Assembly (NCBI GenBank): GCA_965603825.1
Contig: CBFDEM010000052.1
Span: 310,001 to 374,000, forward strand
Length of the DNA stretch: 64,000 bases
DNA from: Blepharisma stoltei ATCC 30299
Lineage: Eukaryota > Protista > Ciliophora
Direction: 5' to 3'
A program made the translations under genes and the position numbers. This document shows positions 53,656-59,515 of this stretch, piece after piece (positions within the stretch are counted from its first letter, which is position 1; each line of letters begins with the position of its first letter). The notes below the pieces were generated by a model. The model saw only the letters and a list, made by a program, of their open reading frames with translations. It ran no database searches and had not been told where the DNA came from.

Positions 53656-56404
53656 ATGAAAAGGCCAATAAATATTCTTACATTCACTCAGAAAGAAGAA
53701 CCATTGAGTTTAACTGAAATCAAGCCTATCTCTTTAATAGCCAAAGAGCTTTCTCTTCCAGAACCCCTCACAGAAATCGATCGTAATTACTATTTCAGAA
53801 GCCGATTCACAAGCCCTCTCATTTGAAGAGCGGAAAAAATATACAGAGTCAGCGATGGTTTGACTCAGAACTCTTTTTTTAAAGCGAAAACATCTTAAAG
53901 ACCATCCTTCATATGTATTTGATATTCAGATGCTTGACCAAACAAATCAGTTCGCTAATATCCTTTGCGATTGAATTATTTACAGTCTAAAAAGTGACAA
54001 ACGGACACAAGCGTTTAGTTTAATAGGAGTCCTTGATAAATTAATTGACCCCAAATCCAAGCTAAAATTCAAAGACCGTAGCACATTACGAGGTTGTCTT
54101 CAAATTTAGTAAGAAATATCCAGCACTGGTGCTTATTACCTAAAGGAAAAGAAAAATGACCAAGCTATTGAAGCTTGTGAAAAAGCTATTGCTTTGACAG
54201 AAAAAAATAACGCTTTTCAAGAATTAGTCTTAGCCCTTTCAATTTGCGGTTATGCAATTTGTATGTCCGAAGATCATAAAAGGGCATTGGACCTTCATCA
54301 AAGAGCTTTAGACCTTTTGTCAAATAAATGCAGATTCGAAAATGATAAGGTGAATATTTATATTACTGTATGCTTATATAACACTGCAATAGAATGCGTG
54401 CACATGAATATGAGAGAAGAAGCCCAAAGCTATATCATGCAAGCATATAACATTGCACAAGTTAATTTAAAAGCACTTCCTTTGGTCCATACAAAAGTTT
54501 TGTGGCTTTATAAAGAGCTGAAAGACCAATCACCACAAAGGCCAGACGCTTTGCCTAAAATTGAAAAGCAAAATGCCTTAATTAGCTCTTCAGATAGCGG
54601 AAAAATGCAAAAAAGTACAAAAGATCCAATTAAAATTTCTCCGTCTAAAGCATTACCTCCACATCCATTATTTAAAATGCTTCACTCTAGTGCGCAAGAG
54701 AATAAAAATCAAAGGCCAGGGACTTCTAGTGGCCCAGGCGAAAAAAGAATTGGAAGAGACCTATTAATTTCTAACGACAAAAAGCCAAGACCTGTAAGTG
54801 CAAATAAGCAAGATTTAATTGATTTAGAAAAGACTAATGCAATTAGCAATGATAAGCCTGCATTATCACTGAAAGAGAAAATTAGAATTAGATCAAAAAA
54901 AGAAAAATCAAGAACCAGGATTGAGCCAGCAAAGAAAAATGTGGTAGAAAACATTGGGACAATAAAAGTTAGAAATAACGCTGCAAAAAAGATTCAAAAA
55001 AAATGGAGACTACATTTCAGTGAAAAAATTCTAAAAATAATAAAAATCCAAAACTGATATAGAAGATATAAAAATCAACAGAAATTAGCAAGGCTTAAAA
55101 GAAGCATTATTTTAATCCAATCTATAATTAGGAGAAAAGAAGTATTTCTGAAAGTTAGAGGTATAAAAAGCCTGAATAAAAATATTTTATCAATTCAAAA
55201 ATCATACAGAGGACATAAAGACTATTTGAAATTCAAAATGCTTAAGAATAGCATAATGATTATTCAGGCTGTATTTAAAAGAAAGGATGCATTTATGAGT
55301 GTGCAAGAAATGAAAAATGATTATAAAGATAAAAATATGAAAGTTTTGGATATTCAAAGATGCTATAGAGGATATAGAGACCGAGAAAAAAAGAAAAAGC
55401 TTGAATATGCTTTATTAGCACTCCAAGCTTTATATAGAAGAAAAGAAGCAATATGAGCTGTCCAAGAAATCAGAAAAGTGCGCGATAATGAGGAGGAGCA
55501 AAAAGTTATAAAAATCCAAAAGTGTTATAGAGGCTACAAACAGCGTAAAATAACAAAGCGCATTGCTGACTTAATTTTGATACTTCAATCCTTACTAAGA
55601 AGGAAGGAAGCCATTCTCACTATAAAAAATTTAAAAAGTGAGGTTTATAATGGAAATCGTGAAGTTATACTCAAAATACAAAAAATTTACAAAGGCTATA
55701 AAGAAAGAAAAAGAGTAAAAAATCTCAAAAATAGTATTTTGATTATTCAATCTTTATTAAGAGCAAAATCAGCTTACAGTGAAACTAAAGAAATGAAGCA
55801 AAAAGTTATCCTCACACAGAGTGTTGTAAAGGCGCTATTAGTTAAAAAAAAATACAAGCATTGCCGAGATGGGATCATAAAGATCCAAAGTAGTTGGAGA
55901 AGATTTATTACACAGAAGCAAATTTCTTCTAAGAATGCTTCAATAAGCAAAATAAAAGCGTTCCTTCTTGGAATTATTATTAGGAAACAGTTAGCTAAGA
56001 AAAATCAGTCAGCCATAAAAATTCAGAGCTGATACAAATCCCTAATAGTTCAAAGAAAGCTAAGCCCATGCCAAAGATTTCTCAAGAAATTTATATTGAA
56101 ACTAATATTGGGAATTTGCAAAGAGCTGAAGAAAGATGCTAAAGAATTTTTATGCATTAAAATTGGACAAAAGGAAAAAGCAGCGATTAAAATTCAAAGC
56201 CAATGGAGAAAATGCATTTGAAAGGCAAGAGCAGAAATTATTAAACTGTCTCAAAATAAAGTAAAAGGATTTTTATTAGGAATAATTGCACGAAAGAGAT
56301 TAAGGAAGCAAAAAGTCGCTGCGATAAAAATTCAAAGCTGAATCAAGGGATTTCTTTATAGGAAAAATGCCCGAAAAGTTCAGAGGTTAAAAAGATTACA
56401 TTAA
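53656..56404 (+). CDS. TPR-like + multi-IQ-motif calmodulin-binding protein (~900 aa)
   Basis: ATG 53656, introns 53783-53798 and 54109-54123, seven TGA=Trp; many IQxxxRGxxxR/IQSxxR units; TAA 56402-56404. Confidence 0.8.
53783..53798 (+). other. 16-nt intron GTAATTACTATTTCAG
   Basis: Supplies exactly the frame change needed to join ATG 53656 to the downstream ORF. Confidence 0.8.
53915..53929 (+). other. 15-nt intron candidate GTATTTGATATTCAG (in frame, no stop)
   Basis: GT..AG with A10; not required for ORF continuity. Confidence 0.45.
54109..54123 (+). other. 15-nt intron GTAAGAAATATCCAG
   Basis: Removes in-frame TAG TAA and gives LQIYTGAYY. Confidence 0.88.
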
Positions 56405-56639
56405 AATTGAAACCTTGTAACCCTTAAAAAATATCGAGAATACTTTAATTCTTTGCATTGATAAAATAATTTACACTATAGAATATTTATTTGCATAATT
56501 GGCTATCCATTAACTAATACTTTAAAAAATTGCTTTCTTTAGCATTATAGAACTAATAACTATTTACTTAGAAATTTAAATAATATTTATTGGCAAAGCT
56601 TTTTGCATAGATTTCAAGATTCTAAAAAATTGTAAAAAG

Positions 56640-56710
56640 GTCCAAGGTTGGGATTCGAACCCAATGAATACTGCTGAGATGTTCAATATCTTGGCACCCG
56701 CCTCCCTGGA
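56640..56710 (-). ncRNA. Aberrant tRNA-like RNA (possible tRNA-Ser(UGA) variant or pseudo-tRNA)
   Basis: 7-bp acceptor stem TCCAGGG/CCTTGGA, T-arm TTGGG-TTCGAAT-CCCAA, T5 tract 2 nt after the stem; D-arm only GGC-GGGT-GCC. Confidence 0.65.
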
Positions 56711-57163
56711 GCAATAATTATCTATACCGGAAACATATATAGTTTGTTTCGCATAATTGATAAATCTACTATTTATTATAGGCAAAATCTTACTAATCCT
56801 GATAATTAAAGTATCTTGCTAAATTAAAAAAACGCATTAAATAAATTGCATATCCTATAAATTTCTTCTTATATCTAGCAATACACATAATTAATCCATT
56901 CTTCTTTTACTTTAAGTAATTTAAAGCATCAATTTATTAGCTAATTATTTAAAATTATAAATTAACTTCATTTCTTTTAAAAATTATTTAGCACAGCCTT
57001 ATTATTTCCATATCTTTATTACCCAATAAAAACTAACTCTTTGTTAATACCCATTTATTATATAAAGCCAGTTCAGTTAACATCATCACATAATTTGTCC
57101 TATTTATGCGCCTGATGACTTCTAAATTTCTCTTAATTTCTGATAACCGTTCGATAATATATT

Positions 57164-59515
57164 ATGGTCAAAGAAGGGACTGAGCTAACTGAGCCACTTA
57201 TCCATAAGTCTGGTTCAGCAGCTGAAAAAGACTCATTTAAAGAAGACTACCAATACATTTTCGTCTTCCCCAATCACTTTTCTGAAGACGAAGCTGTAAT
57301 CGCCCCACTCAACGAAAAAATAAGCATTTCTCTCTGCAAAGAAATTTTTGCCAACACTTTTAAGCTGAGTGAAGAAGAAGGACATTCTGAAAGCTTAGAA
57401 ATGAAGCTTAAACAAGAAACAAGCCAGCACATCCCACAGCGTCACGCCTGGATCAGCGAGATGTGGAGAGGATTTTCTAAAGAAAACCAAGGAGAAGTGG
57501 AATTCAGAAGATTCCTAAACTTGATCATAACTTGCGTCCTCAGAGTGATGCAGGAAGATCTTAAATTAGATTTAAAGCTGTTCTTTTCAAGGGATAAAGA
57601 TGAAATATTCTGCAAGATCCGCGCCAGTGAGCACAATTTTAAGGTCCAAGCTGATTTGATGGATTATCATTTACAGTTGAAAAGACCTGAAAGCATTCCT
57701 AGGTCTGGTTATAGTCTGATTTGCCCTTATGGGAGATTTGAAAAAAATAAAGACGAAGAAAAATCAGGCCCAGTTCTCCAGAAAAAGGTTATCAAAGATG
57801 TAGAAAGCAACTATAAGAAGTATGGAACTGATGAAAGACAAGCAAAAACAGGAAATGGGATCACCATGTTTAAATATAAAGACAAAGTAAGAATTCTACT
57901 GGCAATGATCAGTTCAGTTATTGACATTGGTGAGCTTTTAGATAATGACATCTTGATCAACCATTTTTGCATACATAATGAAGAGCAGCTGGCTTTCCTC
58001 AGAAGCAACTGGGGATCATTTTCTATGTTCTGGAAACCTCAGCCACTCCAAAAAGTCAAAAATTACTTCGGTGAAAAAATCGCTATGTACTTTGCATGGC
58101 TTGGGTATTATGTAGCATGGCTTATTGCTCCAGCCATAATAGGGCTTGTAACGTTTATTATCCAACTTATTATGGATAATCTTGATGATAAGGATCAAAA
58201 AATGAACCTTGCTGAAATTTCTCTTCTTATATTTTCACTGTCATTAGCATTAGGCTCTACACTGTTGGATCAGCTTTGGATAAGACGTCAAAATCAGCTT
58301 TCTTGGATGTGGGGAACTACAGATATCCAAGAAGTGGAACAACAACGTCCTACTTATAAAGGGAAATATGGAACTGATCCTGTAACTGGCCGTAAAAAGA
58401 AAATTTCTAATAAATCAATATGGGAAAAAATCAAAAGAAGCATTAGTATGTCAGTAGTTTTCATTTGCATTGGAAGTGCAGTTGTAGCTGTTGCTGCGAT
58501 CATGATTTATCGTGACATTTATGCTAGCTATTCATGGGGTCCGCTTTCATGTGCTGTTATCAATGCTCTCCAAATCAGAATTTTAAATTTAATTTATAGA
58601 AGAGTTGCGAAGTTTTTCACTGAGTGGGAAAACTATGAGTATGATACTCAGTACAACGATGCCTTATGCATCAAACTATATTTGTTCCAATTTGTCAACA
58701 GTTACGCCTCACTTATTTATTTAGGATTCATTAAATGCTATGGAGATGAAGACAACTCACAGTGTTTAGATGAGCTATCACTTCAGTTAGAAGTCATTTT
58801 CGTATTTAATGTAATTTGCAACTTTTTCGAATTAGGGGCTCCTTATTGTTCTAACGCTTGGAGAAAGAGAGCTGAAAAAAGACATTTAAAAGCAATGCAT
58901 GATTCTGGACATAAAGGGAGAAAAACAATGACTTCTACTGAAAAGCAAGCAAGCTTATCAGAATATGAGACACCATTAGACGATTATATGGAACTCATCA
59001 TTGATTATGGCTATGTCGTTATGTTTTCAGCAGCCTTCCCAATCGTCCCACTAATTGCATTATTCGTGAACATTATTGAAGTCAGGGTTGACGCATATAA
59101 ATTATGCTACCTAATGAAAAGACCTTATCCAACCCCTGCAAATTCTATTGGTGAGTGGGAATCTATAGTCAGAACCATTTCTGTTATAGGAGCTTTAACC
59201 AATACAGCAATCATTATTTTCACAGCAAATATTTTCGATTTAACTGATTTCGCTACTAAGTGGGGATATTTCATGGTCATTGAGCACGTCCTTTTGGTAT
59301 TTAAGTTTTTAATCAGCAGACAAGTCCCAGATATTCCTAATGATGTCAAGAAAGGATTGATATGGAGCAATAGAATTTCTGACGAAAAGATCTATGGAAA
59401 GAGCAGCGATGTTGACCAGCAAAGAGTCCTCAGAAATTTATATTTCAAGAACAATCCAAATGCAATTAGGGAAAGATCCATACTAGACCCAGAAAAGATT
59501 GCACTCACGGATTAA
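57164..59515 (+). CDS. Anoctamin/TMEM16 family channel or scramblase
   Basis: NYFGEKIAMYFAWLGYY, TEWENYE, FQFVNSY, DYMELIIDYGY, IEVRVDAYKL, SIGEW. Confidence 0.95.
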   Translation: MVKEGTELTEPLIHKSGSAAEKDSFKEDYQYIFVFPNHFSEDEAVIAPLNEKISISLCKEIFANTFKLSEEEGHSESLEMKLKQETSQHIPQRHAWISEMWRGFSKENQGEVEFRRFLNLIITCVLRVMQEDLKLDLKLFFSRDKDEIFCKIRASEHNFKVQADLMDYHLQLKRPESIPRSGYSLICPYGRFEKNKDEEKSGPVLQKKVIKDVESNYKKYGTDERQAKTGNGITMFKYKDKVRILLAMISSVIDIGELLDNDILINHFCIHNEEQLAFLRSNWGSFSMFWKPQPLQKVKNYFGEKIAMYFAWLGYYVAWLIAPAIIGLVTFIIQLIMDNLDDKDQKMNLAEISLLIFSLSLALGSTLLDQLWIRRQNQLSWMWGTTDIQEVEQQRPTYKGKYGTDPVTGRKKKISNKSIWEKIKRSISMSVVFICIGSAVVAVAAIMIYRDIYASYSWGPLSCAVINALQIRILNLIYRRVAKFFTEWENYEYDTQYNDALCIKLYLFQFVNSYASLIYLGFIKCYGDEDNSQCLDELSLQLEVIFVFNVICNFFELGAPYCSNAWRKRAEKRHLKAMHDSGHKGRKTMTSTEKQASLSEYETPLDDYMELIIDYGYVVMFSAAFPIVPLIALFVNIIEVRVDAYKLCYLMKRPYPTPANSIGEWESIVRTISVIGALTNTAIIIFTANIFDLTDFATKWGYFMVIEHVLLVFKFLISRQVPDIPNDVKKGLIWSNRISDEKIYGKSSDVDQQRVLRNLYFKNNPNAIRERSILDPEKIALTD

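Follow-up and report, generated by a model that had tools for sequence, protein, structure and literature searches.

The DNA analysed here (the window) is a stretch of 64,000 nucleotides of Blepharisma stoltei Contig_56, G000:C52:310001-374000, taken from a 41.46-Mb assembly of 64 contigs in which C52, C33 and C1 denote Contig_56, Contig_39 and Contig_1; its tRNA coordinates agree base for base with the published tRNAscan-SE table of the B. stoltei ATCC30299 macronuclear genome. Between two plus-strand genes, a TPR/IQ gene that ends near 56404 and an anoctamin gene that starts at 57164, lies a 71-nt tRNA-like RNA gene (G000:C52:366640-366710) that is antisense to both neighbours and represents the sole match to the covariance model of its family within the 64-kb window (Table 1). 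It forms a GC-rich island in an AT-rich spacer (51% GC vs. 21-23% in the 300-nt flank on each side) and carries a promoter set of its own, consisting of a TATA-like run, a B box and a T5 terminator. The A/T-only window with which the TATA-like run coincides emerged from a comparison of 97 canonical tRNA gene copies of the B. stoltei genome. All of these elements had been recognised in an earlier note on this DNA, whose minus-strand letters and coordinates are likewise correct (gene at 56710-56640, followed by a single C at 56639 and T5 at 56638-56634). In a germline-containing assembly (L140), the element is free of interruptions. Germline-only insertions were seen there at ~56938 (~0.55 kb), the nearest one and located in the spacer, as well as at ~58340 (~0.6 kb) and ~58640 (~0.4 kb), both inside the anoctamin gene.

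Neither ARAGORN nor tRNAscan-SE predicts the Contig_56 gene, and Rfam returned no match to it at E up to 10, nor to its paralogs up to E 1. The suspicion that standard scans would overlook this tRNA-like RNA is supported by these results. The Rfam result covers the models for mascRNA, vault RNA and Y RNA, of which distant members could be missed; a vault RNA or Y RNA is without support and without a match. A tRNA-Sec was rejected, since RF01852 has no match at the element and the true tRNA-Sec is encoded at C30:34444. A plus-strand tRNA with a UCA loop was discarded as well because of its wrong arm order and wrong terminator. Two non-genomic runs contained no contig over the element, neither of them being a usable tRNA library for a 71-nt RNA.

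Table 1. The tRNA-like gene and its parts in window positions, followed by the full-D-arm genes in assembly positions.
Feature	Position	Strand	Basis or remark
tRNA-like RNA gene, 71 nt	56640..56710	-	family model 82 bits (by construction)
TATA-like run, -31..-25	56735..56741	-	same place as A/T-only window upstream of canonical tRNA genes
Acceptor stem, 5' strand (U1, C2, C3 as in tRNA-Glu/Asp)	56704..56710	-	covariation
Connector, single nucleotide	56703	-	sequence; homologs have 1-2 nt
Miniature D hairpin, 3 bp, 4-nt loop with GG	56693..56702	-	covariation
Long "anticodon" stem, 5' strand, 7 bp	56684..56690	-	pair probability 0.64-0.94
10-nt loop, closed by invariant G-C pair	56674..56683	-	homolog comparison
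Long "anticodon" stem, 3' strand	56667..56673	-	predicted fold and homologs
Variable linker, 2 nt	56665..56666	-	predicted fold
T arm with B box, 5 bp, 7-nt loop	56648..56664	-	covariation
Acceptor stem, 3' strand	56641..56647	-	covariation
Discriminator C73	56640	-	common to all 19 family and sister-family genes
T5 Pol III-type terminator	56634..56638	-	T run after every homolog too
Conserved block	56626..56744	.	7 differences in 119 nt in organism B, 94% identity
Full-D-arm genes	C12:82833-83495 (3), C33:56555, C37:127654, C42:21578/21724/52403, C62:61866, C3:113481, C38:104463, C10:276672

Fold of the tRNA-like RNA

The gene shares the 7-bp acceptor stem and the 5-bp T arm with TTCRA loop of canonical decoding tRNAs. 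All seven acceptor pairs form in 7/7 homologs, with two-sided changes at four of them, while the T arm is 100% paired across the seven genes and shows such changes at three pairs. Both arms had been described as perfect in the earlier note, but the acceptor of the Contig_56 copy (U1:A72) includes one G.U among its 7 bp. The 3-bp hairpin that had been taken for a miniature D arm is supported by covariation, with two-sided changes in the distant homologs. Its 4-nt loop retains only the GG from among A14, R15, G18G19 and a full A box, in agreement with the earlier view that a normal A box and D loop are missing; this GG occurs in 7/7 genes and likely makes the elbow contact with the T loop.

The centre of the molecule looks different from what had been proposed. 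The minimum-energy fold (-21.4 kcal/mol) leaves the acceptor, D hairpin and T arm of the earlier proposal in place, but instead of a 4-bp anticodon stem with a 7-nt loop and a 12-nt variable region it has a stem of 7 bp that closes a 10-nt loop, followed by a linker of 2 nt, compared to -18.7 kcal/mol for the form with the 4-bp stem, whose pair probability is only 0.02 (vs. 0.64-0.94). The long stem retains 6-7 pairs in each of the seven homologs with differing letters, whereas the 4-bp stem is paired at 35.7%, which equals the level of shuffles. Within the 10-nt loop, the fifth base U and the sixth base C are invariant in the seven genes, and no 7-nt register with U33 and purine 37 exists in more than 3/7 of them.

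The folding energy alone is ordinary (z -1.4); the case against chance is built on comparative evidence. Over the acceptor, D, closing and T pairs of the seven genes, 95.8% of the cells are paired and 10/17 pairs show two-sided changes, values as high as these being found in 0/500 shuffles and in none of the slid controls, with the shuffle control inflated by relatedness. Seven sequences from two lineages form a small and related sample. The earlier impression that all four stems pair in a manner unlike random decay therefore holds for the acceptor, D and T stems, which covary, but not for the 4-bp stem, which stays at chance.

The reading of the gene as a non-canonical tRNA-Ser(UGA) that employs a 4-bp anticodon stem for relaxed decoding has become scarcely credible. 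Four pairs can indeed be drawn in the Contig_56 sequence, yet the stem they form is improbable and unconserved, and the supposed anticodon letters lie across the pairs with which the long stem closes. The same letters UGA recur in two distant homologs, which can be traced to the closing U-A and G-C pairs together with the first loop base. Moreover, eukaryotic tRNA-Ser requires G73 and a long variable arm (PMC9976931), in place of which the Contig_56 gene has C73 and its 2-nt linker, and three ordinary tRNA-Ser(UGA) genes are present in the genome. The conserved fold with long stem and 10-nt loop thus argues against a serine tRNA. A UGA-decoding tRNA-Trp(CCA) with 4-bp stem was rejected too, because those genes are separate loci and the 4-bp stem is not conserved here.

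Decoding of any kind appears unlikely from the sequence. The gene has no canonical 5-bp anticodon stem with a 7-nt loop that carries U33 and purine 37. Atypical mitochondrial tRNAs, for example mammalian tRNA-Ser(UCN), share with the Contig_56 RNA a one-base connector, a small D loop and a lengthened anticodon stem (PMC4394434), but they decode, and even the most reduced ones retain a 7-nt anticodon loop (PMC4394434), whereas the Contig_56 gene is nuclear and specifies a 10-nt loop. The lack of a shared U33/purine-37 register and the 7-nt loop kept even in minimal mitochondrial tRNAs thus speak against codon reading.

Paralogs and homologs in other ciliates

By its sequence, the gene is the fifth copy of a tRNA-like family that has already been reported. 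BLAST against the own genome detected only the Contig_56 locus itself, while sequence patterns of the T arm uncovered four paralogs (C33:543661, C1:245787, C1:246555 and C1:246761), and the covariance model found no further copies in the genome beyond these five. The four are 66-73% identical to the Contig_56 copy, with which they share the acceptor, C73, the mini D hairpin, the T arm and the 10-nt loop. They correspond to the gene on Contig_39 and the three on Contig_1 that were described as tRNA-like RNAs in the supplement of a 2023 preprint, which reported YAMAT-seq coverage of 7700-7800x, base modifications and added CCA for them (bioRxiv 10.1101/2023.10.09.561518). The preprint, which does not include this copy among its named genes, also mentions reads at six unpredicted loci, two of them without a name, and the Contig_56 copy is plausibly one of these two. 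[quoted passage not shown] A Stentor locus, MPUH01000092.1:29518-29590, is listed in the preprint as an odd tRNA. In this frame, the family was a possible UGA-decoding candidate or a set of pseudogenes confined to Blepharisma. The present analysis adds a fifth copy, a corrected fold, a link to Glu/Asp tRNAs and the finding of homologs in a distant ciliate that shows no evident UGA=Trp.

The Contig_56 copy is under purifying selection. In a second organism (organism B), judged to be a Blepharisma relative by synteny and 87-94% coding identity and represented by two DNA runs with the syntenic region on single contigs, the conserved block of Table 1, which extends 34 nt upstream of the gene and takes in the TATA-like run, is better preserved than the adjacent coding block (68 differences in 508 positions, 87% identity; p=0.027), whereas the spacers on either side do not align at 80%. 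A second short spacer block at 56826-56916, located 5' of the element as well as of the anoctamin gene and possibly regulatory, aligns as well (~85%). For another relative with 68% identity, traced by synteny through the anoctamin gene, the contig ends before the position of the element. At the loci examined in Stentor and elsewhere, no family copy was found in the local neighbourhoods covered.

Homologs outside Blepharisma came from a pattern scan of metagenomes, in which one contig (L146) contained two family genes 270 nt apart, a pair that was recovered in four further assemblies (five in total). One of the two, at L146:918-989, is 71% identical to the Contig_56 copy overall; its loop matches the Contig_56 loop at 8/10 positions, and it displays compensated changes in the acceptor, D, long and T stems. 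No synteny was apparent between Blepharisma and the distant ciliate. A viral collection yielded no family match, and pattern matches in prokaryotes were rejected as tRNA-His with encoded G-1:C73 (L150, L169, L170) or as chance. Both L146 genes are preceded at a distance of 8-17 nt by the 8-nt word AACTAGGG, which was not seen before the Blepharisma genes. The spacer between them (L146:1060-1230) is GC-richer, contains words resembling boxes C and D, differs by a 29-nt indel between samples and has no Rfam match.

With copies in the same genome, the island in organism B and distant homologs with compensatory changes, the search for copies and orthologs that the earlier note had proposed turned out productive, and the structure is conserved in both organism B and the distant ciliate. 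These data also bear on the idea of a decaying tRNA pseudogene or SINE-like relic that is still transcribed. Low copy number, divergent paralogs and the pseudogene suggestion for the Contig_1 copies would fit such a relic, but the conserved island in organism B and the compensated homologs in a distant, gene-dense genome largely refute it, and neither an A-tail nor dispersed copies were found, which leaves it a very low probability. Nor is the gene a plain deletion derivative of any tRNA of today's genome, and a tRNA-derived SINE was rejected on account of the five copies, the gene end at a T run, synteny and conservation.

The distant ciliate has a gene-dense genome with a GC content of 41-43%. 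Between its calcium pump and the closest Blepharisma match, identity is 54-55%; Stentor is the best named relative of its Ku80 (58%), and an anoctamin that occurs in one of these samples and is assumed to belong to the same organism falls outside Stentor and Blepharisma in a quick tree. None of its 32 called genes ends at TGA, and 166 TGG codons were counted in those genes; at the TGA:TGG rate of Blepharisma (44,087 vs. 78,535), many of the 32 would be expected to end at TGA. We infer a heterotrich with standard code. The sample name appears to refer to a saltern, and the organism is probably Fabrea salina, which has a streamlined genome (PMC9004412). The presence of homologs in a ciliate without sign of UGA=Trp indicates that UGA reassignment is no precondition of the family and, together with the unconserved 4-bp stem, leaves the proposed connection to relaxed decoding unsupported. 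The family is thereby shifted off the UGA-decoding question, being either older than the reassignment or independent of it. The matching gene kept in such a distant ciliate rather points to a probably ancient job outside codon reading.

A sister family and a probable link to Glu/Asp tRNAs

B. stoltei contains 12 further genes with U1:A72, C2:G71, C73 and a 10-nt loop that possess a normal D arm (full-D-arm genes, Table 1). They carry a 4-5-bp stem, U35 is not fixed among them, and they are 49-58% identical to the Contig_56 copy. The tRNAscan-SE table lists them with low scores as Ala, Val, Leu, Phe, Ser, Arg, Met or Undet, and this dozen of mislabelled genes inflates the annotated anticodon list. 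A G[N5-C-N4]C loop is common to 19/19 genes (seven short-form and 12 full-form). Counted in paired layers, the short form (3 D + 1 + 7) equals the full form (4 D + 2 tertiary + 1 + 4), so that the distance between loop and elbow may be the same in both. Compensation by stem length is known from atypical tRNAs.

In the ranking by the short-form model, the full form comes next, ahead of the C15:410321 gene, which combines C73 with a Glu(UUC) loop of normal type; the canonical Asp and Glu tRNAs (27-30 bits) follow as the last and only other matches. In B. stoltei, tRNA-Glu and tRNA-Asp resemble the Contig_56 RNA in U1:A72, C2:G71 and C3:G70, as well as in U35-C36 if counted in the same way from G30, but the latter differs in C73, the 3-bp D stem with 4-nt D loop, the 7-bp stem, the 10-nt loop and the 2-nt variable region. 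In the anticodon slot counted from G30, five of the short-form genes have CUC and the other two AUC, which makes the U35-C36 equivalent invariant in all seven; all full-form genes have NNC there. U35 and C36 are Glu/Asp identity bases, G73 is required for Asp, and C73 is normally a mark of Pro or prokaryotic His (PMC9976931). The discriminator is A73 in tRNA-Glu and G73 in tRNA-Asp of B. stoltei. Probably, the family descends from a Glu/Asp tRNA by addition of one base to the loop, which is the simplest account of these sequences. Two genes at G000:C15:410082-410395 (L121), namely Glu UUC and a Val CAC with a deletion, exhibit the family acceptor end and C73 with normal 7-nt loops and could connect the family to tRNA-Glu. 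A further unusual tRNA-like gene, whose anticodon arm is shortened (L092, G000:C4:968603-968671; Lys(TTT) call at 38.5 bits), has G1 and A73 and was rejected as a family member.

Possible functions

We consider it likely that the Contig_56 gene encodes a selected, non-decoding tRNA mimic, and on balance favour a mascRNA-like RNA that binds a tRNA-reading protein. As in mascRNA and menRNA, a small D stem-loop with two G residues is combined with a longer anticodon-equivalent stem and short linkers (PMC11693755); a CCA end (known from the paralogs in the Contig_56 family) and presumed mimicry of the elbow are further parallels. mascRNA is uncharged and binds GlnRS (PMC11693755; PMC9976931). It is, however, released by cleavage from a Pol II lncRNA, of which it forms the 3' end, whereas the Contig_56 gene is free-standing and of Pol III type; mascRNA is also the shorter molecule and has a compact loop in place of the 10-nt loop. 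The likeness is one of convergent design, not of membership, with no sequence relation, and the mascRNA design was apparently reached independently in this ciliate family.

In such a scenario, a stand-alone Pol III gene derived from a Glu/Asp tRNA would give rise to a stable L-shaped mimic without a part in codon reading. Its maturation by RNase P, RNase Z and the CCA enzyme could proceed, as in mascRNA, through the acceptor/T half, which these enzymes recognise, and the GG of the D loop, while the long stem may replace the lost D-loop layers and thereby place the 10-nt loop as in the full-D-arm sister family. The oversized loop and the missing D-arm core would exclude the RNA from decoding, and C73 would prevent aspartylation. 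The invariant U35-C36 equivalent may then contact GluRS or AspRS as first candidates, with the RNA acting as an uncharged regulator or decoy by analogy to mascRNA with GlnRS. This specific assignment is the least certain step and tentative, and since U35 is not conserved in the sister family, not every member has a synthetase as its partner. Conceivably, the paralogs are old specialised versions, as suggested by the Contig_56 loop type that is kept across lineages. An abundant tRNA mimic in a gene-dense ciliate would offer a tractable case for non-decoding roles of tRNA-like RNAs.

Alternatively, the RNA could be charged, most likely with Glu by GluRS, to serve as a donor outside normal decoding or as a ribosome adaptor with extended loop. 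Bacterial GluRS ignores the discriminator, so that C73 would be compatible with glutamylation. The CCA end and an abundance of the paralogs like that of true tRNAs would suit this explanation, as would the invariant U35-C36, the Glu-type acceptor, the apparently compensated arm length and the sister gene at C15:410321 with its normal Glu loop. Still, D-arm pairs required by bacterial GluRS are absent (PMC9976931), the 10-nt loop lacks a conserved U33/purine-37 register and ordinary tRNAs serve all codons, which makes charging rather unlikely. The same low standing is given to a broader version, according to which the five short-D-arm and twelve full-D-arm genes constitute an old, heterotrich-wide adaptor class with its own biochemical role, for instance as GluRS-charged donors or as readers with an extended loop outside normal decoding; if true, each loop type would specify another partner.

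Charging with histidine would presuppose that Thg1 adds G-1 opposite C73. One Thg1 gene was found, and the prokaryotic tRNA-His end with G-1:C73 matches the end pattern, a likeness that was selected by the pattern rather than independent and is probably coincidence. A GUG anticodon and an encoded G-1 are both missing, however, and the strong YAMAT-seq capture of the paralogs suggests a free NCCA end, so that a histidine acceptor seems very improbable.

Little more can be said for the RNA as a source of fragments, bound by Piwi or others, or as a decoy that intercepts toxins with which intracellular symbionts cut tRNAs. Ciliate Piwi is known to bind tRNA 3' fragments, and the large exposed loop as well as the conserved 3' end would be in line with such uses. 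But the compensated acceptor changes imply that shape was kept rather than fragment sequence, and the paralogs accumulate as abundant full-length, CCA-tailed RNA, for which reason we regard these uses as quite improbable.

The tRNA body might also be a scaffold that presents the 10-nt loop of each paralog as a guide for pairing with another RNA. The loops vary among the paralogs, yet the Contig_56 loop type persists across lineages (8/10), and a precedent exists in the trypanosome sRNA-85, which is tRNA-like and pairs with 7SL RNA (PMC2800229). No loop, however, matches the SSU rRNA or the next 1.5 kb above shuffles in a test confined to these sequences; three loops match near SSU 353-372, none of them significantly. 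Since the fixed invariant C is better suited to protein recognition than to pairing, a guide function appears improbable compared to the protein-binding mimic favoured above.

The trypanosome RNAs sRNA-85/sRNA-76 resemble the Contig_56 RNA as dedicated tRNA-like RNAs with a non-decoding job and replace the missing SRP9/14 (PMC2800229). SRP9 was not found in the B. stoltei genome, which may reflect a limit of the search. A corresponding replacement role was rejected for lack of its premise, since SRP14 is present at C16:307442.
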